Assembly (NCBI GenBank): GCA_019828565.1
Contig: JAHDYR010000040.1
Coordinates: 64,269-128,268, forward strand
From: Carpediemonas membranifera BICM
Lineage: Eukaryota > Protista > Fornicata
DNA length: 64,000 nt
Direction of reading: 5' to 3'
Shown here: one piece after another, positions 2,898-63,479 of the stretch
Layout of the letters: each line of letters starts with the position of its first letter
Position numbering within the stretch: the stretch's first letter is position 1
The notes under the pieces: generated by a model
The model's input: the letters and a program-made list of their open reading frames with translations, nothing else
Told to the model about the DNA's origin: nothing
Databases searched by the model: none
Program-made: the position numbers and the translations under genes

Positions 2898-5800
2898 CTA
2901 TCTCATTGGCGAGCTTGGGATCACGATCCTATCAAGACTCGACAGCCTTGGAGATATTGACACTTCTGAGCGCCTCGGTGTTGTTGGAAGCACAGGATTC
3001 ACACCAGAGGGCGAATAAAGTGTGGAAGCGCCACCAATACCTGCAAGGGGCACGAGACGTCGGGACGACAAGGGCGACACCGAGGTCGAGTGAGATCCTA
3101 GCAGGTGGGATTGACTACTGGCGAGGCTCAGCGGCGGTAGCTTGACACTGTTTGTCCTCGCGTTCACGCTAGAGGGCACGAGAATGGGTAGAATCGCGGT
3201 CGAGTCGTCCGTTCTTGCCACCTTGGGACGCCTACGACGCATGACAAAAAGCAGTGACCCTGGAACAAGTGCCAGAGTGCACGCGGTGACAACAACTCCG
3301 GATACGAGAAGGCACGCGAGTATTCCAAAGATTGGAACTGCCACTCCCAGTGCGACAAGAAGCATGCTGCCAGACGCATCGCCACCTGTTGGATCAGAGT
3401 GTGCCAGAAGAGTCTGCCCACTATAAGCATCGATTTCACAGTGCTTGATGACGTCAAGGAATGAATCATACCTCTGGACTGACGCGCAGACCCTCCCGCC
3501 CGATAGGAATAGCGGGGAAAGTTCGGATTTGTCGAGGAGGATTCGAATCAAGTCGGTGGATCCAAAACGAGCACCGACCAGAGCTACGCAGACAGTGGCG
3601 CCAGCCTCGCCCAGCTCAGCAGTCGTGGCCCCGTCGTCGGAGATGAGGTAGGGGCTGAACGTGGTCAGGATGGCAGTGGAAATGGGTCCGGAGGCGACAC
3701 ACTGGACAGAGGTTGAGCTCAGAGCTGTCACGGTGCTTAGAGCTGCGGTCCAGTTGATCGTCTTGACTTCGAATGAGGAGGGGCAGATTATGCTGGTCTG
3801 ATTGACAGCGAGGCTCGCTCCACTGACTGTAAGATCTGGATCAATCATTATATTCGATGGAATGTCCACAATCAAAGACTCGACCAACCCATCAAAGTTG
3901 AGTGTCAGGTCGTATTCTCCGGCAGGAATGACCCCGTCAAATGACACACACACTGGAACAACCAGAGTCGACTCATTTCCAGTAACAACAGCACAGGAAC
4001 ACTCGCCAAACGAAGCAGAGAGTAGGGCCGACGAGATGATTGAGCCGTTGATGATGATGGCGCTTGGGGTGTCTACCAGGTACTCGAAGCACTCGTCGTG
4101 GGGCTTGCCGTCGGCTGGAGTGCTTGTGAGAGATGGGCAAACGTCACACGCTCTGCCGCCCTCACTGCTGAACTTGCCGTCGTCACATGGTGTGGGCCCT
4201 GTGTCAGCCGCGGCGCTGTAACCTGCGGGAATATCTATGCAGGCCGACTGGCCCTGGGCCGTCTGGTATGTCGAGGCCGGACAGGGGGTCTGGTCAGTGT
4301 GGGCGCCCGTGGGTGGGACGTAGTAGCCGGGGTCGGCTGGGGTACACTCGCTGGAACCTGTGTTGGGTGAGAATTTGCCGGAGTTGCACTCGGCTTGGGC
4401 AGATTTGTCGGTCTCGGGGACGTAGTAGCCAGCAGCTGCAGCGTCGCAGGCTGCCTGCTCTGAGTCTGAGTAATGACCAGAGGGGCACTCACCGCACGAG
4501 ACCTGTCCCCCGAGTTCTTGGAACGTGCCCGGTGAGCACGCCGTCTCGCTAGTAGCAGAGGGACCTGGGACATAGTGGCCTGCGGACGCGTCTGTACATG
4601 CTGCCTGTCCCTCGCCGCTGTATGTGCCAGCAAGGCATGGGTTGCACGAGGTCATCCCCTCGTCGGGCTGACAGGTGCCTGCGGGGCACGGTGTCTGGGT
4701 CGACTGGGTTGAGTCGGGGACGAAGTTACCGGCTAATGCTGCAGTGCAGGTCGACTGGGCGGCGGAGGCAGTGTAGGTGCCGGCCATGCAGGGGTACTGT
4801 CTGGACTGGTCGAAAGCGGGGACAAAGTAGCCTGCATCCGCTGCGGTGCACGTCTCCTGGCCGCCGGGGGAGTAGTACCCCGTGTCGCACGGCTCCTCAC
4901 CGCTCCTGGCCGCGTTGACGTGGTGCGCGGCCCGGGCCTTGGTACATGAGCCCGAGCCCTCTGTGGCGTACCAGCCGCTGGGGCAGGCCTCGATGTCACT
5001 CCTGTCGCTGGTCGGGACGAAACCGGCAGGGGATACGGTGCATTGGGACGCGCCGGCGCTGCTGTAGTAGCCGCTCTGGCAGGGCGTCTGGCTCGACCGG
5101 GCGCCGTTCGCCGGGACATAGAAGCCGGCGCTGGTCGTGATGCAAGAGGTCTGGGCAGCTGCCGGCTGGTACTTGCCGTTGTTACACGGTTTCTGCAGGG
5201 ACTTGTCAGCGTCATCCACGTAGTATCCAGCCGACGCCCTCGTGCAAGTATCTGAGGCCGCTCCAGGGGGACTGTAATATCCAGAATTACACGCGACACA
5301 TGACGACTGCCCCTCTGCCGACTGGTAAGTGCCGGCCTCACACGGGGTCTGGGTAGTGTGCCCGTCGCCGTCGTCGGCGGTGTAGTACCCAGGGCTGACC
5401 AGCTCACACGCCGTCTGGCCCGGGCTGGGCTGGTAGTAGCCACCGTCGCACGGGAGCTGCTGGGTTTGGTCACAGCTTGGGACGTAGTAGCCGGCTTCGG
5501 CGGGGGTGCACTGGCTGCTGCCTTCTGCCGAGTATGAGCCCGGGGGGCAGGCGTCCTGGGTCTCGTGGGGCTTGCCGTCGGCTTCAGTGTAGAACCCGGC
5601 ATCTGTTTTCAAACAAGAGGTTTGACCTGTGCGCGGCTGGTAGTGGCCGTTATCGCACGCCACCTGCCTTGTCTTGTCGGAGTCAGCGACGTAGTACCCG
5701 GTCTCAGCGCTCGTGCATGCCACACTCTGCACGACCGCGGAGAACGTCCCATTGGCACACGGGGTCGGGCTGGTTCGAGCCCCATCGGCAGGGACGAAGT

Positions 5801-10872: not shown

Positions 10873-11655
10873 ATCATTGCGGATTGCTGAGCTGGGTTGA
10901 GTGACGATGCACGGGTCTCGGCTTTGGCGACTATGCCACGTTGTTTGCTTCACACTCGTACTTATATCCTCCACTTCTTGAAACAAACATAGTGATGCCG
11001 ACTCCACGTGCAGTCGAGTCTGCCAGGTTTGCAAGTGTTTCCCCAATGCAGCATTTTGTGACTCTGCCACAGTCAACCGCGCATGCACCACAAAACATGG
11101 TAGGGGCCGTGTGGCAGTGAATACATTCGCAGATCATTTTGAGGTCATGGAGGTGTGTTGCATCGGACATTGCGATGAAGTTCCCTTCGTGGTGACCTTG
11201 CTAATCGAAGAGGAAGTGACACAGCATTTACTATGTAGCTGGACAGTCAGATGATCGTCGGTGTTGTGGGCGAGGTCTGCTGCCTCGGCAGAGTGTGACC
11301 TCAGATAGGACTGGAATCAGGTTGTCTGCTGAGAAAGACTGAACGTCATACGAGAAGCGGATACGAATCATTTCCCACTACCCAGACCCAGTTATCGCAA
11401 AGGAAGTGATGCGGCTGCCTACAGGAATGTGCAATTTCGGGCATCGGCTGGCTCAGTCGGGCATGGGTCAAAGTACCATCCAGCTCACCACACAACCCGG
11501 CCATTCTAATGCTAGGTTGGTCTTTTAACATGCAGTCCAAGTGCAACGTAGGCTAGACGGCGCCGAATGTGTAGCGTTTAGACTAAGACTTGAGGGTAGA
11601 ACCTCCTGTAGTGGTGAAAATGGTCTGAACTACTCATAAATAGATTCAACAGAAT

Positions 11656-13933
11656 TGTTGCGCAGTATAAACACATTGTTCGAACCTCCAGACAGGGCCT
11701 GAAAGGAACGATCAAAGTGCCAAACTGCACAACATCATCCGTCCGTAGACGAATGTTGGCGGTTAACCAATTGATGATACTGGAATGATGTTGGAAGGCG
11801 CGGGATCGAGGTGCGACTGAATGGAGAGCCACTGAGCTCATCTTCCGTGGCAAGAGAACGCCACAGGATGTTCTCTGCAGCACTCTTGTCCCGATGATCA
11901 ACATTCAGAGCATCAGGAACTGTTGCGCGCCACTGAGCACCACGGCACTGTGGATTTTCGCAGAGCATCACACGATGTGGGTGAACGTGCTGGTCATCAC
12001 GCGGACGAACTCGCTTGTAGGGGGCGTGGCTGTGAGGGCAGACGACGGTGGTGCGATCCTCGTCTACCATGTTAAGATCGACGACAATGTTATACCCTTG
12101 AGAAGGGGTACTATCTCTCTCGCGAACTTTCGATATGGCGCGCAAGGAATGAACATACCAGCAGGCGTGGTGAATCCCGAGCTCCCGTAGAAGACTTTCA
12201 GGCGAATGGGGGTCGCGATGGGATGGTGGCGACCGAACTCCCGAGCCAACTGTTGGCCGCAGCGGGCGAAGTGCTTCTGGCGAAGGATGTGGTTCGCAAA
12301 GCGCACTCGGCGGAAAGACTTACGCATTCCAGCCTCGAAAATGTCGTTCGCGTTGTCCAGCACAAACCTAATAGAGTTGTTGATACTCACTAGTCTTGTG
12401 CTCTTGAACGACGCGGCCGTCATATCAAAGCCGAAACTTGGCGTCTTAGTGTATCCGCACTTTGGGAGGACGCCGGAGCTGGTGGTGCCATCGGGGTGCC
12501 TGATGTAATACCCTCCGATGGACCTTGCGCCCGGGTCGAACCCCATGAGGTGGGCATCAGGATCCGGCGCGGGCGGAGCATCGGCATTATTGGTCCCGAG
12601 TCGCGGGCGCTCTTTCTCCCGCCATTTCGCTCGCTTTCGAACAGGCATGCTCGCATCATGTTGTGGCCGATAGTGGCCGAAGCCTCTCCTAATCGTCACC
12701 GCCACACAGACCCCATCGGTGCTCAGGCTGAGCAGACGGCCCATTGACCTGGGGTTGTCCCGGTAGCGTCTTTTCTGCTCTTCTGTCAACGGTTTGGTGG
12801 CGTGTGGGAGTGCGTGATTAATTCCCACACGATGACAGAAATTATCATTCAGTAGGCCCATCGTGTCACCGTAGGCCATGAAGCCCGGTCGGACGGGGGG
12901 CCATGGGCACGATCGGCACGAGGCGAGGCTGGCGGAGCGACATCGAGTACTCCCCGTTGAAGTGGCTGATGAGGCCACTCAACGTCTCCACTCCGTCAGC
13001 AATTGCCCAGACGCAAGAGAGAATGCGTGGGGCAGCCTGGGAGACTGGGAGCCCGTCGTTCTCACCCATGTGAGTCGCCCAGAACAGCGAGGGGAGACAC
13101 GCAAGGATCTCAGGGTTGACCATGTTGAGGATGGCGTGAACGCCGGCCAACTCCTGCTCGAAGAAGGCCGGAGAGCCAACACCTGCGAGAGCTTCTTCGA
13201 GTCGGGCGAGGGTGCCCTGTAGCCTGTCACGGTACGTCGTCACCGTGCGGGCGAGCCACAGCTTCACAGAGTTGGCGTATCGGATGAACCACTTCCGGAG
13301 ACTGGGACTCACTCCATGCGACTCCGCACGACCTTCGAGCTGCGCGACCAGATCCTGCGTGGTAGTCTCCCGCCACATCGGCAGAGTGTCGAGCGACTGC
13401 ACGATGGCCGCGTAGGCCTGACCCGGATGACCGCCGCGTAGATGAGTGAGCAGTCCTTTGTGGAAGTCGGCGTCATGTAGGGGGAGTTGCCGGCGCTGCG
13501 CATAGCATTCAACCGCGAGCCGGGCCAGCAGGCATGAGTAGAGATATTTTGCTGCGGCGTAATCCCCCACTCTCCGTTCTTCGGTGTAGTTCTGTCTGAA
13601 AGCTTGCTTGATGGAGGCTTTGATCGTATATATCTCCATCTTGTTGCGCACTACAGGTGTGCAGCTGGTCATAGATGAAGATGTCATATGAGCCGACGAT
13701 GAACACCATTACCAGCATATACAAGTGTAGAAGTGAATTTAATGTGGAATAGAAGACAATGAGACGACGTGTGAGCGATTGTGATGATTTGCAGCTGTGC
13801 TGACGTCCACGAAGAAGACGCTTTGTGGAAGCCCTGGAGAAGACGATCTCCCTACCGACTTTAGACGTGAGTAGGAGGGAGACAGGGCAGTGTTGCGCAG
13901 TATAAACACATTGTTTGACCCTTCAATAGCACA
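11656..13933. mobile_element. Fanzor-carrying non-autonomous element bounded by micro-LTR-like direct repeats
   Basis: Identical 25-mer TGTTGCGCAGTATAAACACATTGTT at 11656-11680 and 13891-13915; unit starts TGT and ends ACA; AGAAT on both sides (11651-11655, 13934-13938); purine tract 13869-13890 before the right copy. Confidence 0.6.
11735..13639 (-). pseudogene. Fanzor1 (eukaryotic TnpB-like RuvC RNA-guided nuclease), ~634 aa after correcting two compensating frameshifts
   Basis: Motifs in order across three ORFs: YTIKAS, STDGVCVAV, RuvC-I GFDPG, bridge-helix RFANHILRQK, VFYG..GF, RuvC-II VDEDRTT, Zn-ribbon CPHSH/CENPQC, RuvC-III HRDKSAAENI, terminal PFSR. Frame breaks at G6 12895-12900 and at 12095-12108. 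Confidence 0.88.
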
Positions 13934-13986
13934 AGAATGCAGGGGCAAAACTGCACATTTGTTCATTTTGAGACGAACGTTTGGTT

Positions 13987-19776: not shown

Positions 19777-21231
19777 ATGAAGAGCGGATATAGTGTTTCA
19801 GGCGCCGCTTCATTCGCAGCAAGTGCGTACAAGTCAAAAATGAGTTCTACCTTCGCCAATCGACGAGCGAAGGTTGTTCAAGAGACTACATATGGAAACG
19901 ACACCGAAGTGGACTTGTCTGGCCTTATTGCCGACAATGACACGCATCCTGCCGTCTACGGTGTTGTTAGGATTGCTATTAAGACCGGCAAGCGCATCCT
20001 AGTGGACCAGTTCTTCCCAGGGAGCACCAACTCCTTCGTCAGAATTTGCTCACAGAACAACTCCCGCAAGACGCGTGTTTCACAGATCACCAAGGGCCTA
20101 GCGAGTTGGAATGAGGTGAAGCACTTCCCTGTCGAGGTGAACCGCAACAAACGGCACCCTACAAACCTCATGACGATTGAACTGTACACGTTCAGCGGAA
20201 ACATCGCAGTCACCGAGCCTCCCAAGCTACTGGGCAGTGTAGGGTTCCACCTGCATGACCTGGTTCGGGCCCAGCATGTCAGAGACGAGTTCAACCTCTA
20301 CAGCGGAGAGGCGATGATCGGCGCGTTAGCCATTGAGATAACTTTTACTTACGGTCTCTTTGGCTACGGATACGCACCCCAGATGCCCGACCTCGTGCCT
20401 GCTAACAAGGCCCTCAAGCGCTCACTGCTCCCGAGGGTCGATCCGCCCCGACGGAGGACCGACCCCCGCCGTCAAGTGATGCTGGCTGTAGCAACTGACA
20501 CACCCTCATTCATCCAAGCCGAGCCGGCCATTCTTGGCGCCACTGAGCGCATCCGTCAGCCCGAGGATATCGGTATCATCGAGGATTTTACCGAGAAGTT
20601 CCCGCTCCTCAGCAGTCAGATGACCAGCCTGACCAAGATCAGAGAGCACAGCCAGACACTCAGCAGGCACGACAGGCTGCAGTACCTCAAGCAATCCATG
20701 TTCGACGCGTCGCGGCGTACCCAGTATGTGTCCGTCGCCCGGTTTAACATGTCGAATCACGACACTCGGCCATTTATGAAATACATGCAGCCCGCACGTA
20801 TACCAATCGGCCGGGTGAAAGCGATGGGCTCGAGCGAGGACGGACCTAAGCCGAGGGCAGCCAAGGATTCGGGCGTGAACGACTCGCCGCCGATGATCAT
20901 GATTGAGGCCGAGTCCGAAGGAGAAGAGACCAAGGCCGACACTCCAGGCGCCATCCGCAGCATCATGAAGACACCAGGCCATGTCAGGCGCCGGTCGACT
21001 AGGAATGGACTCATGTTGGTGCAGTTTAGCCAAGAAGTCGACGAGCTCGAGGCCGAGAGGGAGCGGCGGATGCTGACCGAGTCGCACAAGCCCCGGCCGC
21101 GGAGTCCGCCGCCCAGAGACCCTGATGCGGACCTTGAGGTGGGTATCTTGGACGAGGCGAGCAAGCTGAGTCTCGGGTACAGCAGTAGCAGCGATGAAGA
21201 GGATTATGAGGTGTTTAACGGTGATATTTGA
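19777..21231 (+). CDS. C2-domain protein, C2CD6/ALS2CR11-like
   Basis: C2-like region (FVRI...KTRV...WNE..HF...LLGSVGFHLHDL) followed by FTYGLFGYGY and RSLLPRVDPP. Confidence 0.6.
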   Translation: MKSGYSVSGAASFAASAYKSKMSSTFANRRAKVVQETTYGNDTEVDLSGLIADNDTHPAVYGVVRIAIKTGKRILVDQFFPGSTNSFVRICSQNNSRKTRVSQITKGLASWNEVKHFPVEVNRNKRHPTNLMTIELYTFSGNIAVTEPPKLLGSVGFHLHDLVRAQHVRDEFNLYSGEAMIGALAIEITFTYGLFGYGYAPQMPDLVPANKALKRSLLPRVDPPRRRTDPRRQVMLAVATDTPSFIQAEPAILGATERIRQPEDIGIIEDFTEKFPLLSSQMTSLTKIREHSQTLSRHDRLQYLKQSMFDASRRTQYVSVARFNMSNHDTRPFMKYMQPARIPIGRVKAMGSSEDGPKPRAAKDSGVNDSPPMIMIEAESEGEETKADTPGAIRSIMKTPGHVRRRSTRNGLMLVQFSQEVDELEAERERRMLTESHKPRPRSPPPRDPDADLEVGILDEASKLSLGYSSSSDEEDYEVFNGDI

Positions 21232-28128: not shown

Positions 28129-28208
28129 TGAAGTTCTCAGCCCAGCAACACGGATGATTTAGATCAATCTGTAATATATGTAACACGTAAACGGGGACCT
28201 GAACTTCA
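28129..28208 (-). repeat. 3' LTR of element B (80 bp)
   Basis: Identical to 37987-38066; directly follows the purine-rich end and TAG stop of pol. Confidence 0.95.
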
Positions 28209-31200
28209 CTACCTCCGCTTCCCCTTCTGCGCGTCCCTCCACGCCTTCATGTACTTCTTGAATTCCTTATTCCAATCGGGGCGTCGGAGCAGGTACAGCT
28301 TCAGGTGCTCGTTATCTTTGAGCTTGTCTGCGTCCACCCATTGCTCGAACACGTCATCTACCTTGGCCCAAGCGACAAAGAACTGAAGGACATCACCAGC
28401 CCATCGTTGACCACCGATTCCGCGCACCACTCCGCACTTGTCATCCTTTCCGCGTTCGACCATAGCCTTTTCGATCGTCATTGCCTCCTGTACACGGTGT
28501 AACCTCGAACCATGCCGCACGTACTTCGCGCTAGTAGCGGGGTCCCATATCTCAGCTGTATCCATATGCCCCGTGTTCACGCTAGTAACCAAATAGGGCC
28601 CGGTCCGCTTGAGCTCGAGCACCGAGTGATTGGCCTTCCTCTTCCCATCAACGTTGCTGGCGCGATCCATCAGCACCCACATACCGATCTCTGGCTTGAC
28701 CTTTCCCCTCATCTCCCCCTCGCCTCTCAAGTCCGTGGGCTTGGCCGTGCCTTCGACGAACTCGTTCGGGGCTCCGCCCAGTGACTCCACCCTCCTGCTG
28801 TTCAGTGTGTCCTCCACTTCGCGCAGCGCTGCCGTCCACCTGGGATCGGTGTCACGGTAGGTGACCCGCTCCAGCTCCCGCCGCACATCCCTGTTCCTCC
28901 TCTCGACAACCCCGTTTGCCTCGTGTCGCTCCGGGGTCGTGTGGTGTACCGTGGCGCCCCACTCACTCTTAATAAACTTCGCGAACTTCGCCGATTTGAA
29001 TTGGCTCCCGGCGTCGGCATGCACCGCCTTAGGCGTGACGGGCCACTCGATCGTCCTCAGAGCCTCGATCGCGTCGTCGGACGTTGTCCTGACCATCGGC
29101 CTGAGCCATGTCCTCCGTGAATATCCGTCCACCGCCACCAGGATATGCTTGGCCGACGGGTCCTCCTCCAACCCGCCCATGGTGTCAATGAAGAGTACAT
29201 CCCCCACCGCGTCGCCCGTCGGTATCTTGCGCGTGGTCCATTGTAGTTGGTCGGCCAGGGATGTAGATCGCTTCTGCTCGTACACGTTCTTCTCTACTGG
29301 GGCGCTGGCGGCCGCCACCTTGGTTGGCATCCGTGACAACATATCGGCCATCGGGTTGTCCACTCCGTTGACGTGGGTCAGCTCGAAGTCGAACCGGTGC
29401 CTCAGGTCCAACGCCCATCCCTGCACCGTTGTGTTCTCCGACTTGTCCATCCACAGGAGGTTCCTATGATCGGTGAACACTCTGATCTTCTTGCCCTTGA
29501 TGTACCTGTCGAAATGCTCGAGACCCTTCTTGACCGCCCACGCTTCCTTCTGTGTCATGTTCCACCTGGCGCGTGACGTGTCAGGTTGGATAGCCTTCGC
29601 AAAGTAGGCCACCGGCAGCCGCTTGCCCTCCCGCTGGACCACCAGAACGGCCCCCACCCCGTGGTCACAGGCGTCAGTCCACACTTCCAACTTGTCGTCT
29701 GGGCTCGGGATCACCATCGCCGTAGCCTTAGCCACCGCGTCCCTGATGGCTTTGAACGCACGCTCGCAGCTCTCATCCCACTCTTTGTCGAAGACCACTC
29801 CCTTCCTCTCGAGCCGATGCAGGGGTGCCTCCATCAACCCCAGCTTCGGGATGCAATCCCTAATCCAGTTGACGGACCCAAGAAACTCCCGCACATCGTG
29901 GACCGACTTGGGCCTTGGTATCTTGAGTATGCCGGCTATCCTGTCGGGGTGTACGCTTCGCTCGCCCTTCCGCACAACCCAGCCGATGTACTCGATCTCA
30001 TCCTTCCCGAACTTGCACTTCTCTTCGCCCAATCCGACGGCGTGCTCCAGCAGCCGGTCGACCACCAAGTCGAGATTCCTATCGTGCTCGTCCTTGTCTC
30101 TGCCGAATATCACAATGTCGTCAATATACACTAGGCAGGCGGTGCCGATCAACTCCCGCAGCACGGCTTCCATTGCCATCTGCATGTGTGCCGCGGCACA
30201 CTTCAGTCCGAAAGGCATGCGGTTATATTCGTACTGTCCGTCCGCCGTTGCGAAGGCGGTGTACCCCTTGCTGTCTTCCTCAATCTCCACCTGGTTGAAG
30301 GCCGCCTTCAAATCAAGGGTACTGAACTTCGAGTTGCCCTCGAGCATCGTGATGATGTCTTCGATGCGGGGCAGGGGGTACTCGTAGTCGTGGGTTAGCG
30401 AATTCAACTTGCGGTAGTCCACGCACAGGCGCTTGTCCCCCGACTTCTTACTCGCCAGTACCACCCTGGAGCTGAACGGAGCCATTGATGGCCTGATGAT
30501 CCCCTTCCTCAACATCGCGGCAACCTCCTTTCTCACCCACCCCGCGTCCTCCGCGGACAGCTTGGCTGGCCATGCCCTGAAATGACCGACGTCGGCCTGC
30601 AGCTTAAGGCTAAACCTCGGCACGTTCGCGGCTGACCCCTCCCTGCCGTAGCGATAGAGCTTCTGCAGCTTCTCCTCTCTTGTGCCGGACGGCGTAGGGT
30701 CGACCCCCAGCCTCTCTGCCGCCTCCGGGGCTATCACACCCCGCTCGACCAACGTGGCGAACCCTACGAACAGGAGCTCCTTCTCCACCAAGCACCACTC
30801 AGTGTGGACACCCGCCAGCCTCGCCCTCGTTGTTGCCACCACCGGTATGATCTCACCGCCAGCCGCTTCTACCTCTTTCACTTCCTTCACAGGTCCGAAT
30901 GTCAGACCCAGCTCCCTCGCTAATCGTGTGGACATCAGGTTGGCCCCGGCCCCAGAGTCTAATAACGCTCGCTCCACTCTGTCCTCGATCATCACCTCTC
31001 GCTCCCATGTCACGGCCTCCGTCTGGCCCGAACACACCACCCTCCTGTTAGGAACCGCCGCTCCACCACCTTCCTTCTCACACGAAACAACATCAACAGC
31101 GTACGCCCGCGCATTTACAGCGTCTGGGCAATCCCTGGCCACGTGCCCCTCCTTCTTGCAACGGAAGCAAACAGGCTGAGGGAGGGGGCATCTGTCGGCG

Positions 31201-31296
31201 AAGTGTCCGGTCTCACCACACCGGAAGCACTTCTGGTGCCGAACAGTCATGCGGGCGACCAGGGGGGCGGAGGCAGTGGTGTGCTCGTCGGCGTGG
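28209..31296 (-). pseudogene. Element B gag-pol, 3' portion (knuckles, PR, RT, RH, IN, chromo-like)
   Basis: Joins 37971-37337 in frame (VETRPTPT|HADEH) when element C and one TSD copy are removed, giving 1240 aa. Confidence 0.92.
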
Positions 31297-31400
31297 GTGG
31301 TGTAGTCAGTATTAATATCTACCAATATCCCTGGGAGGGTCCAAACCTCTTTTTACTCGTAAACTCTTTCTCTTCCAAACCACAGTACTAGTACTTACCT

Positions 31401-34400
31401 ATGGGTAGAGAACAGAAAAAACAAGCGCCGCTCCTGAAAGAGGCAACATTCAGCGCTTTCGTAGCTTTTACGACGTCACTGCGTGACTTTAAGGCTAGAG
31501 GAGGTAAGGCGAAGCTCCGCAAGCTTATAAGCCCGGAGATCCAGTCCTATGCATCACAAGTGCTAGGCTTAGAGACCCTAGAGGAGGTTCCGCTTCCTCA
31601 GGGTGACCAACATGACGACGAACCTTCCACTTCATCACGCAAGCTCAGAGAGAAGATCATCATGCAGCGACTCGCCGCTGCCTTGCGCCCCACCAGAAAG
31701 GAACAATGCCTGAACCTTATCAGGCTGCGCATCGCGGCGTTCACGCCGCTCGAGGTGTCGAAGCTCAACTCGCAGTTCAACACCTTGTTGGAGTGCCTTA
31801 ACATGGACGAGGATGACACCATTCGTGAAGCCTACTTGCGGGCCTTTGCTGTGAAGGGCCAATCCCTCTACTACAGACTGAAGGAGCAGACTGAGGGTTG
31901 CTCACTGGCGGAGACCCAGCAATACACCATGAAGACGGCACGCGACGTAGCCGAGTCGGCTGAGTACCTTGCTCCGTTCACCGAGGCGATCCGCTCCGAT
32001 CAGTCGCGCCGTCCGACAGCGCCCGTGCCAGGCGCCCATCCGCAACGCGGCCAGAGCCGTAACCAGCGCGACCGTCGTGACCGCCGAGATGACCGCCGAG
32101 ACCGCCCCTACGACCGTCGTGACCGCCCGCATGACCATCACCGCCCGGACAAGCGGTCCCGCGATCGGGCTCGCCCTACCAGCACGACCCCAACCTGTTA
32201 CAACTGCGGGGGCAAGGGCCATTTCAGCCCCGAGTGCCGGAAGCCCAAGTCCAAGTGTGAGAAGTGCGGGCGCGAGGGCCACAAGAGAGAGTTCTGTGAC
32301 CGTATAAAGGTCCAGAACTATTCTTATTTGTCTTGTTTCGCGGCGTCTAGCAAACGCAGAGCGCAGGCTCTTCCGATTGTGTCAGGATCCATATACAGGA
32401 CCAGCGCAGAGTCGATGTTGTTCGACTGTGGCGCGTCAGCAACCTTCATATCGCCGCAAGTGGCCGAGAGGTCCGGCGAAAAGATCCTGCATTGTGACCC
32501 GGTCGAGGTGACGACACCGGCTGGAGTCATCACAGTCGACCAGACTATTTCCACCGAAGTAACCTTTGCCAAATCAGCTCTTATCCCCCGTGGGTGCACC
32601 TTTACTACTCGTGCGTACCTCCTACCCTCAGAGTACGATCTAATCATTGGGTACCCTGATATGGTCACCCTGGGGATCCTTCCTCAGATTGACGACTGCG
32701 AGGAGTCTGACGCCAATGACGCCGAGCAGGCTGAAGACGTCTCAACGGTCATTACTCCCCAGAAGTTGAGCCTATTCACCTTGTCTGACAAGTCGTCTTC
32801 CCTTCAGGACAGACTGCTCGCGCGGTTTGTCGGCCTGTTCGAGGACAGAGTAGGGCGTCCGAGTAAGCTCATCCCTTACGATCTAGTCTTGTCTGATGAT
32901 GAACCCGTCTTTAGCCGCGAGTTCTTCATGCCGCCGGAGAAGAAGACACTTCTCCAGGAACACCTTGACGACCTGTCCCGACATGGCTTCATCCAGCCAT
33001 CAGCATCGGCTTACTCCTCACCGGCATTCTTGGTCCCAAAGGGGAAGGACCGTACCCGGTTCGTTATCGACTTCCGTTTGGTCAACGCGAAGACTCCCCC
33101 GTTCAACTACCCTATCCCGATCATAGAGGATTGTCTAGCTAAGCTCAGGGGTAATACCATCTTTGCTACGCTCGACTGCAAGGCCGGCTACCATCAGGTG
33201 GCACTGACGGACCGTTCTCGTCCTCTGACCGCCTTCGGGACTCCCCTTGGACGGTTTGAGTACACGACTATGCCCTTTGGTCTGCGTAACGCTGGTTCTC
33301 ATTTCCAGTGGGCCATGGAGCAGGCTTTCTCCGACCTGATCTCGGCAGGGAAGTGCCTTATTTACATCGATGACATTATTGTCATGGGTCGGGACGAGCC
33401 TTCCTACATAAGGAACCTATGGGACGTCCTGAAACGTTGCCAAGAGTATGACCTACACCTAGGTCGCGATAAGTGCGTCTTCGCCGCGGCTGAGGTCGAG
33501 TTCCTGGGTCGACTCGTGTCCGGAGACACCGTGAGGATTGCCGAAGACCGCATCGACGACATTAAGAAGCTGAAACTACCGACCAGCAAGCGGTCCGCAC
33601 AGGCACTCGTCGGTTTCCTCAATTATTTCCGTGACTTCGTGCCCAACTTCGCGTCCCGAGCTCATCCTCTGTTGCAGGTGTCGGCTGGCAAGGCCGAACC
33701 CGGTGGGCCGGGTCAGCAAGCGGCCCTGGGCGACGTTATCGCCGAGCTCCTTAAGCGGGTCTCCCTCGTTCACTTCAAGACGGACGCGACACATGTCCTC
33801 ATGACCGATGCCTCAGACGTGGGATGCGGCGCCGTATTACTACAGGACGGGCAGCCGATCGCTTTCATGTCCCACGCATTCTCCGCGGTCCAGACTAGGT
33901 GGAGTACCACAGAGCAGGAAGCCTACGCAATCATCCTGGCCGTCCAGCGTTGGCGGAAATTCCTCTCGTGGACGCACTTTACCATCCGTACTGATCACCG
34001 CAACCTGCTGTTCATGGCCAAGTCCATCAACCCCAAGGTCCGTAGATGGTACGACCAACTAGCTGACCTCGATTTCACCATACGTCACGTTCCGGGTGTT
34101 GACAACGGGGCAGCAGATGGCCTTTCTCGCGTGTTCGCTAACACCCTCGATACCCAAGTCGCGGACAGGCTGCAGAAGGCGCATCACTTCGCCGGGGCTC
34201 ACTTGTCCGCCTGGGCGACCAAGAACCTTCTTCGAGACTGGGGCGTGCGCGTCCGCCAGAAGGACGTGGACGACTATATCGCCAAGTGCCCAATATGCCA
34301 GTTAAGGCGTAAGCCCCCGGCCTCTTCCGATGCGGGTTTGCACACCGCGGTCGAGCACCCCTTCGACCGAGTGGCCATGGACACTATGTCCGCTACCTCG

Positions 34401-35441
34401 TGCACGGTCGACGGCACGACCTATAAGTATATCCTCGTTGTAATAGACATGTGCTCACGTTGGACTGAGCTTGTCCCGCTCCAGACTACCCGAGCGGTCG
34501 AGACGTCCAGGGCGTTTGTCAATAACTGGGTCCTCCGATACGGCGTACCGAAGGTACTGCAGACGGATGGAGGATCCCAGTTCGTCAACGCAGTCTTTAA
34601 CGACCTGAGTGCCCGACTCGGGTTTACAACGAGAAAGACGACGGCTCATCATCCCCAGTCGAATGGGTTAGTAGAGCGAGCGAATGTGTCGGTTAAGTCC
34701 ATCCTGACAGCACGTCGTTACCAGTTTAGATCCAATGATTGGGTCCACAGCTTACCGATTGCCCAATACCTTGTTAACTCGACCCCTCGAGTCCCTACTC
34801 GACTCTCCCCAGCCGAGATCCTGTATGGCACCGAGATGCGAGTGCCAAAGGACATTACCGTTATCGCGCCGGGTGAGACGTATATCGTTGACCAGCAAGA
34901 GGACTGGCTGTCCGAGGCCAAGGCGTACCGGCTCATGGCTGCCGAGCGCATTAAGAGCAAGCGGCTCCTACAGCAGTACAGGCCGGACGCCCGTGCCACG
35001 GTTTCGACTCCGTACGTCCTGGTGGCTTACCCCGACAGACCACCCGACAAATTCGCCGCCGGCCTGCGTGGCCCAATGGCACTAGTGTCGGTGCACCAGG
35101 AGTACAACAAGGTTGTTGCCTATACTGTGCGTGACCTTGAATCTCTGAAGCAGTTCAGGGTCGACGCTTCCCGGGTCCTCCCGTTCGATCACGGCGACAT
35201 GTCCGTGGAGCAAGTTACTCGCTTGGCTAACACTGTTGCGGCCGAGTATATACCGAGCAAGATTGTGAAGTCCCGGCCCGACTCCGGTCCGGTCGAGAAT
35301 CGCGAATACTTGGTTGAGTGGCTGGGCTATGAGCCGGACGAAGCTTCGTGGGAGCCATTCGAGAATGTCGATGGCTGTGACAAGTTTGAGGACCTTCTTG
35401 AGCAGAGAGAACTACACCGTGCTGCGCACTCCAGGCAGTAA
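31401..35441 (+). CDS. Gag-Pol polyprotein of element C (1346 aa)
   Basis: CYNCGGKGHFSPEC and CEKCGREGHKREFC knuckles, LFDCGA protease, YIDD RT, TDAS RNase H, HHCC plus DDE integrase, chromodomain (YLVEWLGY...SWEP). Confidence 0.96.
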   Translation: MGREQKKQAPLLKEATFSAFVAFTTSLRDFKARGGKAKLRKLISPEIQSYASQVLGLETLEEVPLPQGDQHDDEPSTSSRKLREKIIMQRLAAALRPTRKEQCLNLIRLRIAAFTPLEVSKLNSQFNTLLECLNMDEDDTIREAYLRAFAVKGQSLYYRLKEQTEGCSLAETQQYTMKTARDVAESAEYLAPFTEAIRSDQSRRPTAPVPGAHPQRGQSRNQRDRRDRRDDRRDRPYDRRDRPHDHHRPDKRSRDRARPTSTTPTCYNCGGKGHFSPECRKPKSKCEKCGREGHKREFCDRIKVQNYSYLSCFAASSKRRAQALPIVSGSIYRTSAESMLFDCGASATFISPQVAERSGEKILHCDPVEVTTPAGVITVDQTISTEVTFAKSALIPRGCTFTTRAYLLPSEYDLIIGYPDMVTLGILPQIDDCEESDANDAEQAEDVSTVITPQKLSLFTLSDKSSSLQDRLLARFVGLFEDRVGRPSKLIPYDLVLSDDEPVFSREFFMPPEKKTLLQEHLDDLSRHGFIQPSASAYSSPAFLVPKGKDRTRFVIDFRLVNAKTPPFNYPIPIIEDCLAKLRGNTIFATLDCKAGYHQVALTDRSRPLTAFGTPLGRFEYTTMPFGLRNAGSHFQWAMEQAFSDLISAGKCLIYIDDIIVMGRDEPSYIRNLWDVLKRCQEYDLHLGRDKCVFAAAEVEFLGRLVSGDTVRIAEDRIDDIKKLKLPTSKRSAQALVGFLNYFRDFVPNFASRAHPLLQVSAGKAEPGGPGQQAALGDVIAELLKRVSLVHFKTDATHVLMTDASDVGCGAVLLQDGQPIAFMSHAFSAVQTRWSTTEQEAYAIILAVQRWRKFLSWTHFTIRTDHRNLLFMAKSINPKVRRWYDQLADLDFTIRHVPGVDNGAADGLSRVFANTLDTQVADRLQKAHHFAGAHLSAWATKNLLRDWGVRVRQKDVDDYIAKCPICQLRRKPPASSDAGLHTAVEHPFDRVAMDTMSATSCTVDGTTYKYILVVIDMCSRWTELVPLQTTRAVETSRAFVNNWVLRYGVPKVLQTDGGSQFVNAVFNDLSARLGFTTRKTTAHHPQSNGLVERANVSVKSILTARRYQFRSNDWVHSLPIAQYLVNSTPRVPTRLSPAEILYGTEMRVPKDITVIAPGETYIVDQQEDWLSEAKAYRLMAAERIKSKRLLQQYRPDARATVSTPYVLVAYPDRPPDKFAAGLRGPMALVSVHQEYNKVVAYTVRDLESLKQFRVDASRVLPFDHGDMSVEQVTRLANTVAAEYIPSKIVKSRPDSGPVENREYLVEWLGYEPDEASWEPFENVDGCDKFEDLLEQRELHRAAHSRQ

Positions 35442-35460
35442 ACGGATTCTCAATCAAGAT

Positions 35461-36548
35461 TTATTGGTAGTCGTCATCGGACTCGTCGTCAGGGCCCTTG
35501 ATCCAGTCCTCGAGCTCAAAGTCGATCAGATACTCGCGAGCCACGCTGACGGCAGCGAGGGTCTCGTCCAGACCAGTGCAGGTAGGGGCAGTGTAGCCCG
35601 CGTACTGAACGTGAAGAATGAGTCGGCGGTCGGATCCAGCCGTCAGGATCTCGTGACCCAGCACGTCAAGGACCTCGTACTCGCGCTCAGGGTCAGAGAC
35701 CTGCATGGCCAGACCGAGCCGCTCCGGCAGGGACGGAAGCTCGTCCATGGCGCGGAGGTTAGCGACCAGGGCGGCCCAGTGAGTGGCGGTGACTGAGACG
35801 TTCTCGCTACGCTCCCCGTGGAGGAACAAGCGGTAGTAGTCTGGGGCGAGGGCCAAGACGGCGACCCGGTACAGGGTGCGGCGGGCCAGGCTCTGGCCGC
35901 AGCCGAGAGCGCGGGAGAGCGAGAACAGGGTCTCCGGGGTGACGTACCTGTTTGAGCCGTTGCCCTTGAGATCGAAAACGCCGGCGTCAACGGCGTCGCG
36001 GACTATGCCGGAGTCGGTTTCGGCACGGCTGCGAGACGCCTCCCGCAGGAAGCGGAGCGCACGATGCTCTCGCTGGAGCTGGACCAGCAGGCCGGCTGAC
36101 AGATCGAGCAAGCCGCCTGCGTCCTTGCTCCACAGCGTGCCGGTGGAGAGGTGATCGAAGATCCCCTCGAGGGGCACCTCAACGAAGTTAACGTAGCCAG
36201 CCAAGCACCGTCGAACCACATCGGCGAGCTGGTCTGCCTGCTTCGTGAAGCACCCCTCCATCACACCCCCCACCGGCACACGGCAGAGCTCCCGAGCGGA
36301 AGTTGCCGGCACGGTGAAGATCCTAGGTAAGAAGAATAGAGGCGCACAAACCGCATCATGGGCATCTGGGAGGCATTCCCGCCGCTCTTGCGGATGGCCC
36401 TCTTCTGCAGGGCGCTCATCGTGCGGGCCTTATAGCGTTGCGTCCGAGCAATCGTCGCAAGGGCATTTTCGAGCACCTTGCGATAATCGTCATCAGTTAA
36501 CTCCATCGAAAGCTCACGAATTTGGTCGAGCGCACGCGTATCCGCCAT
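35461..36548 (-). CDS. Antisense accessory gene of element C with C-terminal chromodomain-like fold, 2 exons (intron 36351-36323), ~352 aa
   Basis: 29-nt GTTTGT...CTTACCTAG intron fuses MADTRALDQ...MMR to IFTVPATSARE in frame; C-terminus EYEVLDVLGH...LHVQYAGY. Confidence 0.75.
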
Positions 36549-37336
36549 GTTTGGCCGCTTTTTCCTCAGGAAAAAGCGACATATCCTGCACTTTTCCCAA
36601 ATGACGAATGGAAGTGCCCATAGTGATCCCCATGACGGACTATTCACAATATTTATATCTCAAACACAGTCCACGAGACTTCTACCGTCCGTGGAGCAGT
36701 GCTTATGATGTTGGTTAACTTTCGGTACAGCGCAGAACAAAAAGAGTCAGAACTCGCCAACGAAGCCGAATTGGGGCTCGAAAACCCCTTTTTCGGGCAC
36801 TGTGTAAGAATGGGGCGGATCAGCCCAACGTACCAGAACTTTCTGTATGAGCGATGGCGAAATGCCTAAAAATGCTCGGGGCCAGAATTCCCGAGTCGAG
36901 CGCGAGCCCCAGAGTGCCCGCGAGGGGGCGGGGCTGTGGTACGTCCTTTTTATACTTATACAGGAGCTCCTGAACCCATATCTTAATTAGCAGCGCTGCA
37001 TAGATCTTTTCCGAATCTTTTTGATATCATCCTCGAATCTTTCGGTCACACCTTACTACGCATAATACCTCACCTGGAGGTTGCAATAAGACGTAATCCC
37101 AGAAGTTGGTTGTCGTTATCCCGTCGATAATTCCAATAGTGGTTCGGCATGAGCGAGCGTAATCCCAAGTTCGATTGGTGGCTCTAGCCCCACGTAATAC
37201 CAGATGTTGGTTGTGGTGATGGCCGCGCGACTGCTTGGCCATGGGGGGGAAGTGTAGTCAGTATTAATATCTACCAATATCCCTGGGAGGGTCCAAACCT
37301 CTTTTTACTCGTAAACTCTTTCTCTTCCAAACCACA

Positions 37337-37971
37337 GTGGGCGTGGGTCTCGTCTCTACAAGCTCCCTCGCCGCGCGCAGGACGACCGTAACTGCGGCCT
37401 GGACCGACGCCGCCTCGCGGACGTCGTCCTCGACCTTGGTGCGCAGTTCGTCGTCGACGATGGCCTCCGTGAGGAGACGGCGGGCCCGGGCGTCCGACAC
37501 CATCGCGTCTCCGCAGATGCGCCGGACGAGCTGAAACCTTCTCAGGTAACGCGAGACCACGGAGGGTGACACCCCTGTCATCCGCCCCGACATCAGTCTC
37601 TCGTGCCCGGCCCGGGTGGCTGGGCGAACCACCGACTCCACGACGCCCATCCAGGCGCGTCGCAGGCGTCGGGCTCGCTCAGCCTTGGTCTCCTCGTGGT
37701 CCGAGTCACTGGAGGAGGTCGAAGAGTCGGAGCTTGACGACTCATAGACGTTGACGCGCGGGGGATCGTAGTCATCGATACTCTCCAGGCCTGCTTCCAT
37801 CAGAGCCTGTGCCTTGACGTCTCCGCCAAGGCACCGGTGGAAAGGCCGCGCGTGGTACGATGTACGGTACGATTCGTACCACAGTACGAATTGCACGTAG
37901 CTATCAACGTCAAGACTTGCCAGTTGGCGCGTCTTATCGGACTCATTCGTATCTCGGCTAGAGTTGTGCAT
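37337..37971 (-). pseudogene. Element B gag, 5' portion
   Basis: ATG 15 nt after the 5' LTR; cut by element C at the GTGG TSD. Confidence 0.9.
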
Positions 37972-37986
37972 ACACAGTTATATAAC

Positions 37987-38066
37987 TGAAGTTCTCAGCC
38001 CAGCAACACGGATGATTTAGATCAATCTGTAATATATGTAACACGTAAACGGGGACCTGAACTTCA
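37987..38066 (-). repeat. 5' LTR of element B (80 bp)
   Basis: Identical to 28129-28208. Confidence 0.95.
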
Positions 38067-39006
38067 GTATCAACGCGGGCCATGTCCTGGCAAACGTTTT
38101 AATCTGTCTCCGACTCGGTATCCGAATCGATTTATACATGTATACATGTATCCGAATTCTGCGCCGGGAGGGGGGGTCCTGATCATCTGGTGGCTGCAGC
38201 CGAGAGCGCCCGCCACGCGCAGAAATCGAAGTCTGGTCGCCCAAAGCGCAACAGTTTTGCCTAAATAATGGAGGGGATTCGTAAATTCATTTACGATTTT
38301 ATTCTATTTACGTGAGCGCCCATGATACGTTAATTGGAAAGTCACGGAGGGAGTCGCTGATGCTGGGCCGTAGCCACACCGATGAATAAGGGTAAGAGGG
38401 GAAGAGTAGAGGTTGTGCAGTTTAGTCAACATGGGCGGACAATAAGACTAGCGCCAAGGAGACGATGGTGGCTCTTCGCGAACGTTCTGTGACCGTAGTT
38501 TCATCCACACTCCTTATGCTGTGGCGCTCGTTGAGTCTTCCTGCCCTATAGTCTCAGTAATCAACATCAATGCACAGATGCGGCGCTATGAACGGGTTTT
38601 GGCGAGAAGTGTGCGAGGTTGCCGTTTTTATAGCGCTATGCTGTTGATTCTCGGTTCTCTTATGCTCATTACCTGGCACTGAGGCTTTACCGATTGGGGC
38701 ACAACTCAAACCGAAGCTAACAACCCAGCCTCACCTCCCAACCTCTTCCAGCCCGCTGAATACAGTGAATGCAGGCAATGCTTGCTCAGTAGGGCGCTTG
38801 CTAAGTCCCCGGCGACACGATTGCCTTGCTCCATTCTGAACGGGTAACCAATGACTGTCTGCGAAAGGTACTGCCGATCACCAGGAGAACTGCCTGTGTG
38901 GGTGAGTCCCATTTATCTGCTTTATATGAACATGTAACAACTTACAGTCGACTTCATCCGTGTCATGCGAATGAACAGTGCTTGACATCTGGCGAAGTCG
39001 CTTATA

Positions 39007-52407: not shown

Positions 52408-52646
52408 GGAGAGCTGAGAAACGCCAAGCCGCTCCTTCTGTTGCCGGTTGAGCCACTTGGGGCATTGGCGGCGGGGGCGCCAGTGGAGGCAGTGGGACCG
52501 GCGGAAGCGTCGGAAAGGTCGTCGTCAGAGCTTTCGTCATCCTCGTTGACATCTTCCTCGCTCTCGGCCGCTGGGTCGAACGGGAGGCCATCCAGGGCCT
52601 CCCGCAAGCCTCTAAGAGACTTCCCCAGCGGTCTGAGGGCTTCGTC
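52408..52646. repeat. 239-bp dispersed repeat, copy 1
   Basis: Identical by eye to 63205-63443. Confidence 0.9.
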
Positions 52647-62816: not shown

Positions 62817-63479
62817 TCAAAGATCACATGTATTTACTGAAGGAAGTACTTGGGTGTGACAGCGTTCGCCATGGACGTTGGCCCCAACGTGGAGTAGAGT
62901 CGCCATCCTGGTCCAGTAACGCTCTGGTTTCTCCTCCAGCAGCTCGGCGCGGTGGAACACCATCTGGGCGGACCAGAGAGAGACACTCTCCAGAATGGCC
63001 TCTCGCTGGCTCTTGGGGGTAATCATGACCGCCAGGTCGATGCGGGCCATCGCCCGGACCGAGCACCGCTTGTATGCTGCCGTGTGGGCAGCTACGGTGT
63101 CCTCGCAGTCGCCAGCCAAAAACCATTGAGCGGAAGTTTGTGCCTTCAGGGGCCACAACGGACTGGTGAACGAGCGCTCTCGTGACCTCCGGCACCTGTA
63201 CACGGGAGAGCTGAGAAACGCCAAGCCGCTCCTTCTGTTGCCGGTTGAGCCACTTGGGGCATTGGCGGCGGGGGCGCCAGTGGAGGCAGTGGGACCGGCG
63301 GAAGCGTCGGAAAGGTCGTCGTCAGAGCTTTCGTCATCCTCGTTGACATCTTCCTCGCTCTCGGCCGCTGGGTCGAACGGGAGGCCATCCAGGGCCTCCC
63401 GCAAGCCTCTAAGAGACTTCCCCAGCGGTCTGAGGGCTTCGTCTCTATCCTCCGAGTGTGCCTCGAGGAAATTCGTCAA
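62817..63479 (-). CDS. Repeat-derived hypothetical ORF containing copy 2 of the 239-bp repeat (63205-63443)
   Basis: Shares DEALRPLGK...AFLSSP with ORF 52221-52772. Confidence 0.4.
   Translation of the reverse strand: MTNFLEAHSEDRDEALRPLGKSLRGLREALDGLPFDPAAESEEDVNEDDESSDDDLSDASAGPTASTGAPAANAPSGSTGNRRSGLAFLSSPVYRCRRSRERSFTSPLWPLKAQTSAQWFLAGDCEDTVAAHTAAYKRCSVRAMARIDLAVMITPKSQREAILESVSLWSAQMVFHRAELLEEKPERYWTRMATLLHVGANVHGERCHTQVLPSVNTCDL

Follow-up and report, generated by a model that had tools for sequence, protein, structure and literature searches.

In 64,000 nt of the genome of Carpediemonas membranifera BICM (assembly GCA_019828565.1, contig JAHDYR010000040.1, positions 64,269 to 128,268 of the forward strand; hereafter the window), the unit at positions 11656-13933 is a full-length but frame-shifted copy of a nonautonomous, recently active mobile family that carries a Fanzor-like gene. 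Insertion takes place in one orientation, with the right end of the element 10 nt (a 5-bp duplication plus 5 nt) upstream of a motif that we read as a host core promoter or initiator, and the two ends of the element are inherited independently of each other. With slightly more confidence than doubt, we explain the family as a Fanzor-like carrier that moves as one piece, both ends included, most likely through a DNA intermediate and by a DDE enzyme supplied in trans. A first-pass annotation of the window had described the unit as a nonautonomous element with ~40-bp long terminal repeats (LTRs) mobilised by Gypsy retrotransposons. The mobile unit and its LTR-like anatomy are borne out by our analysis, while canonical LTR copying is not.

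The family was searched for in the 24.2-Mb genome of the same organism, and copy structure was read from 50 loci. It amounts to ~120 copies. A DNA search with the unit returned 78 matches, and the repeat found at both of its ends (repeat A, described below) has 231 genome matches at no more than 3 mismatches, versus 0 for a reversed control. The 50 loci include 29 two-ended copies, at least 22 of which are bordered by perfect 5-bp target-site duplications (TSDs), all different in sequence; AGAAT, CAATG, GACCC, CGAGC, TTTTG, and GCGAC are among the duplications of the family. As the first-pass annotation had anticipated for a mobile unit, copies share both ends, homology starts exactly at 11656 and stops exactly at 13933, and the 5-bp flank varies from copy to copy. 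Integration is by a 5-bp staggered cut, with TGT...ACA termini.

Six copies are full length (2.2-2.3 kb), and the others have lost internal sequence. Six classes of deletion, each defined by identical breakpoints, recur at 2-6 loci whose duplications differ. These shared classes at different target sites show that derivatives without most of the gene have transposed, and thus that mobilisation occurs in trans; the Fanzor gene is dispensable in cis for the spread of copies. Solo units consisting of A and the right tail (43 nt) are common, each with its own 5-bp duplication, as expected from recombination between the two A copies. Such solo repeats were among the things the annotation had proposed looking for. 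One 93-nt solo unit (L039) occurs once in the genome. In another pair of copies (L009 and L011; G000:C65:306237-307898 and 329198-330856), GTGAG adjoins one copy on its left and the other on its right, an arrangement of flanks that suggests a ~23-kb inversion by recombination between oppositely oriented copies.

In the window itself, the 25-nt identical repeats, the TGT and ACA termini, AGAAT on both sides, the purine tract, and the near-palindrome all lie where the annotation had placed them, and the gene is antisense to the repeat orientation, as it had claimed. The features are as follows.

11651-11655, no strand: left copy of the TSD, AGAAT
11656-11694, plus strand: left LTR-like unit, repeat A followed by a left-specific tail ending ACA
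11656-11735, minus strand: 3' untranslated region (UTR) of the Fanzor-like gene, with a predicted long hairpin
11693-11701: near-palindrome CAGGGCCTG, after the left unit
11717-11731, plus strand: internal promoter-like motif GTGCCAAACTGCACA, inverted partner of the left terminus (position weight matrix [PWM] score 10.3)
11735-13687, minus strand: Fanzor-like (TnpB/Cas12-type RuvC) gene, in three frames in the window copy
12094-12098, minus strand: -1 frameshift (missing base near 12097), common to copy L003, from an alignment of six full-length copies
12895-12900, minus strand: +1 frameshift, an extra base in a C/G homopolymer, only in the window copy, from the same alignment of six full-length copies
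13869-13890, plus strand: tract resembling a polypurine tract (PPT), 19/22 purines, abutting the right repeat; on the minus strand, the likely start of the Fanzor 5' leader
13891-13933, plus strand: right LTR-like unit, repeat A (13891-13915) followed by an 18-nt right-specific tail ending GCACA
13934-13938, no strand: right copy of the TSD, AGAAT
13943-13957, plus strand: GGGCAAAACTGCACA, read as the host core-promoter motif that marks the target site

The unit starts with TGT at 11656 and ends with ACA at 13933. Repeat A is a perfect 25-nt direct repeat (11656-11680 and 13891-13915), and the likeness continues to ~35 nt, with 32/35 positions matching between 11656-11690 and 13891-13925. A 17-nt core of A has 2 sites in the window, both at the ends of the unit, where 0.05 would be expected. 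TG...CA termini and short TSDs of variable sequence are shared with LTR retrotransposons and with terminal-repeat retrotransposons in miniature (TRIMs), whose TSDs have 4-6 bp. Terminal inverted symmetry is limited to TGT/ACA and does not reach the terminal inverted repeats (TIRs) of ~10 bp that characterise a classical DNA transposon. No tRNA-type (TGG-type) primer-binding site (PBS) was found after the left repeat, only the near-palindrome, which is reminiscent of the palindromes that follow the LTRs of Gypsy elements in the window. Plus-strand open reading frames (ORFs) within the unit do not exceed 114 aa, so no transposase is encoded, in agreement with the annotation.

The two ends of the element differ. 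We compared end variants in 22 paired copies, adding three unpaired right ends for the variant A12G. G23T is present in 8/22 left repeats versus 0/22 right repeats, while A12G is present at the right ends of 7 loci (4/22 paired copies and the three unpaired ends) and in 0/22 left repeats. Position 26 is C in 22/22 left units and T, C, or G in 12, 6, and 4 right units, respectively. The tails are unlike in every copy, ending ...CGAACCTCC-AGACA on the left and ...GACCCTTCAATAGCACA on the right, so the divergence of the repeats at their 3' ends, which the annotation had entered as a caveat, is a consistent difference between left and right. In LTR reverse transcription, both daughter LTRs are made from one template, combining the U3 of the parent's right LTR with the U5 of its left LTR. 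Since one template serves both ends, stable left/right differences are not heritable by this route, and their occurrence here contradicts canonical retro-mobilisation. Instead of two LTRs identical at insertion, as in an LTR retrotransposon, we find variants and tails inherited end by end, and such end-specific inheritance means that the intermediate must carry both ends unchanged.

A second Fanzor family (family 2, ~46-48% protein identity), whose ends were read in one copy (L037:129-2602), is organised in the same manner. In this copy, the direct repeats are 34 nt long and a G-rich tract precedes the right one; the duplication again has 5 bp, and the promoter motif lies at the same spacing. 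Its tails differ, and a longer, right-only tail ends CCACA. The ends of families 1 and 2 are significantly alike (p ~0.001). Given this likeness and the presence of the asymmetry in the family-2 copy as well, the asymmetry looks old and functional. A subfamily with an extended right end, again finishing GCACA, has transposed at least twice (L007 and L014). At L007 (right end, minus strand ~3698-3724; compare L014:3253-3270), the extension turns the terminus into a palindrome, AGCACA-CTGTAC-TGTGCT, with the true duplication after the extension, which could be a hairpin-type footprint of end processing.

Downstream of the right end, the order is the 5-bp duplication, five variable bases, and then CCTTAAACTGCRC. 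This motif is present in 42/48 distinct right flanks, 35 of them with the identical offset, and was not seen in the left flanks of copies. Elsewhere in the window, high-scoring matches to the motif precede long ORFs of the same strand by 17-61 nt, among them a kinesin gene at ~14643 and genes at 19777 and 20997. From this placement, and from the cDNA ends described below, we take the motif to be a core promoter or initiator of the host. The insertion just upstream leaves the promoter unbroken, and the fixed orientation means that the Fanzor gene is transcribed divergently from the host gene. In the ~300 kb examined, the canonical promoter offset is occupied by Fanzor-family ends only, and at one locus (L037, 2534-2660) a family-2 element and a family-1 solo unit are inserted at the same base upstream of one promoter, with three copies of AAGAC. 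The first-pass annotation had made no mention of the conserved promoter motif that lies 10 nt past the right end.

The RNA data consist of complementary DNA (cDNA) contigs from one sample whose RNA status is a guess and whose strand and true ends are uncertain, and they serve as hints only. Contigs with a nongenomic adaptor begin at 13958 and 13965, right after the motif at 13943-13957. The recurring 22-27-nt leader of such contigs has no match in the genome, and from this absence we read it as a library adaptor; a spliced leader was considered and rejected for the same reason. Adaptor-tagged cDNA ends are found at 11584 (minus strand) and at 13958/13965 (plus strand), which suggests that the element sits between two divergent host units whose starts were ~90 bp apart before insertion.

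The gene of the window copy is split into three minus-strand frames (13687-12866, 12978-12064, and 12145-11735), with the motifs GFDPG at 12529-12543, VDEDRT at 12050-12067, and RDKSAAENI at 11867-11893. The RuvC D...E...D triad is in order, and a CxxC...CxxC zinc finger lies between RuvC-II and RuvC-III. In three paralogous families with ~40-50% identity, GFDPG, E(D/F)RT, and RDK(S/T)A(A/S)xNI are kept. Protein-language-model neighbours point the same way, with ESM Atlas feature scores of 0.98, 0.97, and 0.97 to PF07282 clusters from green algae, giant viruses, and Mucoromycota, all of which are known Fanzor1 hosts. The catalytic glutamate stands six residues before the first cysteine (NEDRTTVVC and SEFRTSIVC), and a glutamate six residues before the zinc finger is described as a Fanzor hallmark in a 2026 review (PMC13565253). 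Judged by its motif layout and these neighbours, the protein is Fanzor-like and very divergent, and its length makes it probably a Fanzor1. The first-pass call of a Fanzor1 gene with all three RuvC acidic residues thus stands for the residues and the layout, but the gene is frame-shifted and gives no significant sequence or profile match.

Part of this damage is peculiar to the window copy, in which the first CxxC of the zinc finger also reads CPHS, a Cys-to-Ser change by comparison with the full-length copies elsewhere. In the paralogue L004, 592 codons run without interruption, at several family-2 loci the frame stays open for 634-644 aa, and a transcriptome-derived protein fragment of the family exists (P0043). 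At both frameshift sites, cDNA contigs of the family, which are not assignable to the window locus, show the frame-restoring state: a shorter run at the +1 site in one contig, and an extra base at the -1 site. The frameshifts of the window copy may be assembly errors.

Repeat A read on the minus strand matches the target motif at both ends of the unit (PWM 14.1). The match in the right copy, at 13908, is 206 nt upstream of the first Fanzor ATG and points into the gene, so placed that the right copy is likely the promoter of the Fanzor gene; with this promoter, the 5' leader would begin with the purine tract. The Fanzor 3' UTR terminates in the left copy, and a predicted stem there pairs 11656-11667 with 11724-11735 (fold z = -4.3). 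An analogous terminal stem with a different sequence is predicted in family 2, although the fold as a whole does not outscore shuffled sequences (z = -1.4). The 3' hairpin region has no match in Rfam. Coverage by cDNA contigs is heavy across 11673-12150, and at other loci some contigs extend past the left boundary. On the folding model, the 3' UTR hairpin is a candidate for the scaffold end of an omega-RNA. The terminal direct repeat would then be a promoter module whose right copy drives Fanzor, and the left copy and the 3' UTR hairpin would together form the end of a guide-RNA scaffold that reads into the left flank.

How the element is moved has to account for both its retroelement-like anatomy and its asymmetric ends. 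In canonical TRIM-like retro-mobilisation, a plus-strand RNA would be copied by Gypsy reverse transcriptase (RT) with PBS/PPT priming, given two identical ~40-nt LTRs, and inserted by Gypsy integrase. This would explain the TGT...ACA termini, the 5-bp TSDs, the purine tract abutting the right repeat, and the solo units. The resemblance of the near-palindrome to the palindromes after Gypsy LTRs also speaks for it, and two adaptor-tagged cDNA ends within the left repeat (11673 and 11676) might mark starts on the plus strand. We nevertheless regard this route as quite improbable, since the variants and tails specific to each end have passed unchanged through many insertions, the one family-2 copy has the same asymmetry, and a tRNA-type PBS is missing. 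The two intact Ty3/gypsy elements of the window, B (28129-38076) and C (31301-37338), have 4-bp TSDs, as the annotation had itself cautioned, are not located at promoter motifs, and have LTRs without significant similarity to the ends of the unit (p = 0.1-0.8). Nor are integrase genes enriched near Fanzor genes, with ~3/99 within 5 kb, about the chance level, in our own count from two lists. On these grounds we do not retain the canonical Gypsy mobilisation that the annotation had proposed. A noncanonical retro route is a rather unlikely candidate, in which RNA/cDNA that keeps its ends, or linear extrachromosomal DNA, would be inserted by a promoter-tethered Ty3/gypsy-type integrase, the element being a retroelement-derived shell that needs only integrase. 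The ends would need no more than ~5 bp of inverted symmetry (TGTG...CACA), as for retroviral-type integrases; the subfamily with the extended GCACA end has moved at least twice; and the genome holds more than 700 integrase candidates. Ty3 and Tf1 are precedents for 5-bp TSDs and for promoter targeting at a fixed offset. Against this route, there is no plausible promoter upstream of either terminus for an end-to-end RNA, no matching Ty3 family was present in the ~300 kb examined, and we know of no mechanism by which linear DNA could acquire exact asymmetric ends when LTRs are not regenerated. If true, a shell inserted by integrase would be the first link between an RNA-guided nuclease of the OMEGA/TnpB type and retroelement integration machinery, with a built-in safe-haven rule of 10 nt upstream of a core-promoter motif.

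Insertion in one orientation at a fixed distance, 5-bp TSDs, and TGT...ACA ends are also seen in Tn7-like elements, and the minus-strand repeat matches the target motif, as would be expected if Fanzor and an RNA from the terminal repeat recognised the promoter motif and directed insertion next to it, in the manner of CRISPR-associated transposons. We find this hardly credible: the target motif is degenerate at several positions, which fits recognition by a protein and not base pairing, no more than 5 nt separate the insertion from the motif, the catalytic triad, in contrast to that of Cas12k, is intact, gene-less derivatives still transpose, no transposase is linked, and a repeat that serves as the gene's own promoter explains the likeness to the motif more simply. 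Our favoured explanation remains a trans-mobilised carrier that moves as one piece. A DDE enzyme of the retroviral-integrase superfamily is suggested by the TG...CA ends, the 5-bp duplications, and a requirement for terminal symmetry that does not exceed ~5 bp. It has been argued that Fanzor benefits only elements that excise (PMC13565253), and with a benefit limited in this way, a DNA cut-and-paste route fits better. In the proposed mechanism, a DDE-type integrase or transposase supplied in trans would handle a DNA intermediate that LTR-type reverse transcription does not rebuild, and the target would be chosen by tethering to a protein bound at the promoter motif, by analogy with Ty3 or Tf1. 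The LTR-like anatomy may go back to a retroelement ancestor or have arisen by convergence.

Several observations weigh against this explanation. We found no partner, transposase or integrase, whose ends match, ~300 kb having been examined for Ty3 families. A TIR of TGT/ACA only is short for a classical DNA transposase, and features typical of retroelements (the purine tract, the solo units, and the TG...CA ends) keep conserved positions in two families. The empty site of the window insertion, which the annotation had proposed looking for, does not occur elsewhere in the assembly, and no excision footprint was seen. The bases directly adjoining the element ends vary, and no conserved sequence like a transposon-associated motif (TAM) lies beside the would-be target. 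The hint-level standing of the RNA data counts here too. The assignment of the protein meets similar objections. Seven members fall below threshold for Pfam PF07282 (best E 0.028, 15 bits, versus a cutoff of 26.3), and NCBIfam searches likewise stay below threshold. The three ORF pieces and the 592-aa paralogue have no phmmer match in the PDB, and profiles of two alignments reach Cas12f as their best PDB match without significance (E = 0.31). An exhaustive phmmer search of 1.84 billion representative proteins returned 28 proteins, apparently C. membranifera's own paralogues only, and a profile search against 5.8 billion proteins gave essentially the same few proteins of C. membranifera. Two AlphaFold models are poor, with a mean predicted local distance difference test (pLDDT) of 49 and 39.

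Some further observations concern the Gypsy elements. In B and C, LTRs of ~80-84 nt are followed by a perfect 10-bp palindrome (GTTATATAAC, GTACTAGTAC) at the usual place of a tRNA PBS (28210-28232, 37976-37986, and 31385-31394). The position of these palindromes suggests unusual priming, perhaps self-priming or dimer priming. In C, which is a chromodomain Ty3/gypsy element, a 283-aa antisense ORF (35461-36312, minus strand) lies between pol and the 3' LTR, with no Pfam match and no similarity to Fanzor. Elsewhere in the genome, an integrase match (C6:1728676-1728969, minus strand) is followed 2 kb downstream by a Fanzor-like fragment in antisense orientation (G000:C6:1725589-1726713, plus strand). 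This arrangement is the one expected of an autonomous Ty3 element with antisense Fanzor cargo, or it could be a chance adjacency. A 239-nt repeat of 100% identity in the window (52408-52646 and 63205-63443, 10.8 kb apart) was rejected as a pair of LTRs for want of TG...CA ends and looks like duplicated coding sequence.

Fanzor and TnpB are thought to persist by restoring excising transposons; here, the vehicle has retroelement-like ends, and both ends move unchanged. The identity of the mobilising enzyme would either add a new transposition chemistry to those of known Fanzor carriers or bring to light a so far unrecognised DNA transposon of integrase type, and it would also test "restorative homing" where no fixed TAM adjoins the target. 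The target motif itself provides a usable definition of a core promoter in a little-studied metamonad.

Described carriers of Fanzor1 are Mariner, Sola2, MuDR, Harbinger, Helitron, Crypton, hAT, EnSpm, and piggyBac elements, and some described Fanzor1 families lack TIRs and are unclassified (PMC3627910, PMC13565253). No retrotransposon is known to carry a Fanzor/TnpB nuclease, according to the 2026 review (PMC13565253), and we found no paper linking Fanzor with Carpediemonas in the literature library searched. Like the Fanzor1 transposons of Bao and Jurka (2013, PMC3627910), the family has a TnpB-like nuclease as its sole cargo and many copies, many of them internally deleted, and its protein has ~630 aa with the catalytic glutamate 6 residues before the zinc finger. 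What sets it apart from the described Fanzor1 carriers is the promoter targeting, together with 5-bp TSDs, TG...CA ends, and direct repeats at both termini, and its protein is too divergent to match any Fanzor by sequence.

TRIMs and large retrotransposon derivatives (LARDs) likewise lack gag-pol and leave solo repeats, and their short direct repeats at both termini, TG...CA ends, 5-bp TSDs, and purine tract upstream of the right repeat are all found in the unit; the unit departs from them in repeats that are not regenerated from one template, stably asymmetric ends, the lack of a tRNA PBS, and antisense cargo. Ty3 of yeast and Tf1 of fission yeast similarly have 5-bp TSDs and insert near transcription starts in compact genomes, at positions set by a promoter-bound factor. 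The unit is likewise placed beside a promoter motif, presumably by tethering, but unlike these autonomous elements with true LTRs, it encodes neither RT nor integrase, and its offset is fixed to a core motif of RNA polymerase II type. Tn7-like and CRISPR-associated transposons resemble it in TGT...ACA termini, 5-bp TSDs, direct repeats at both ends that look like binding sites, fixed-distance insertion in one orientation, and a Cas12/TnpB-type protein, and differ from it in that the unit has no TnsB/TnsC-like genes, a eukaryotic host, an intact triad, and an insertion point a few base pairs from the motif. Carriers of the IS200/IS605 or IS607 type have no TSD, a TnpA of the HUH or serine-recombinase kind, and a fixed TAM next to the insertion, while the unit has 5-bp TSDs, no second gene, and variable flanks. 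Direct repeats, TG...CA ends, 5-bp duplications, and promoter targeting at a fixed offset are a new combination among Fanzor carriers.

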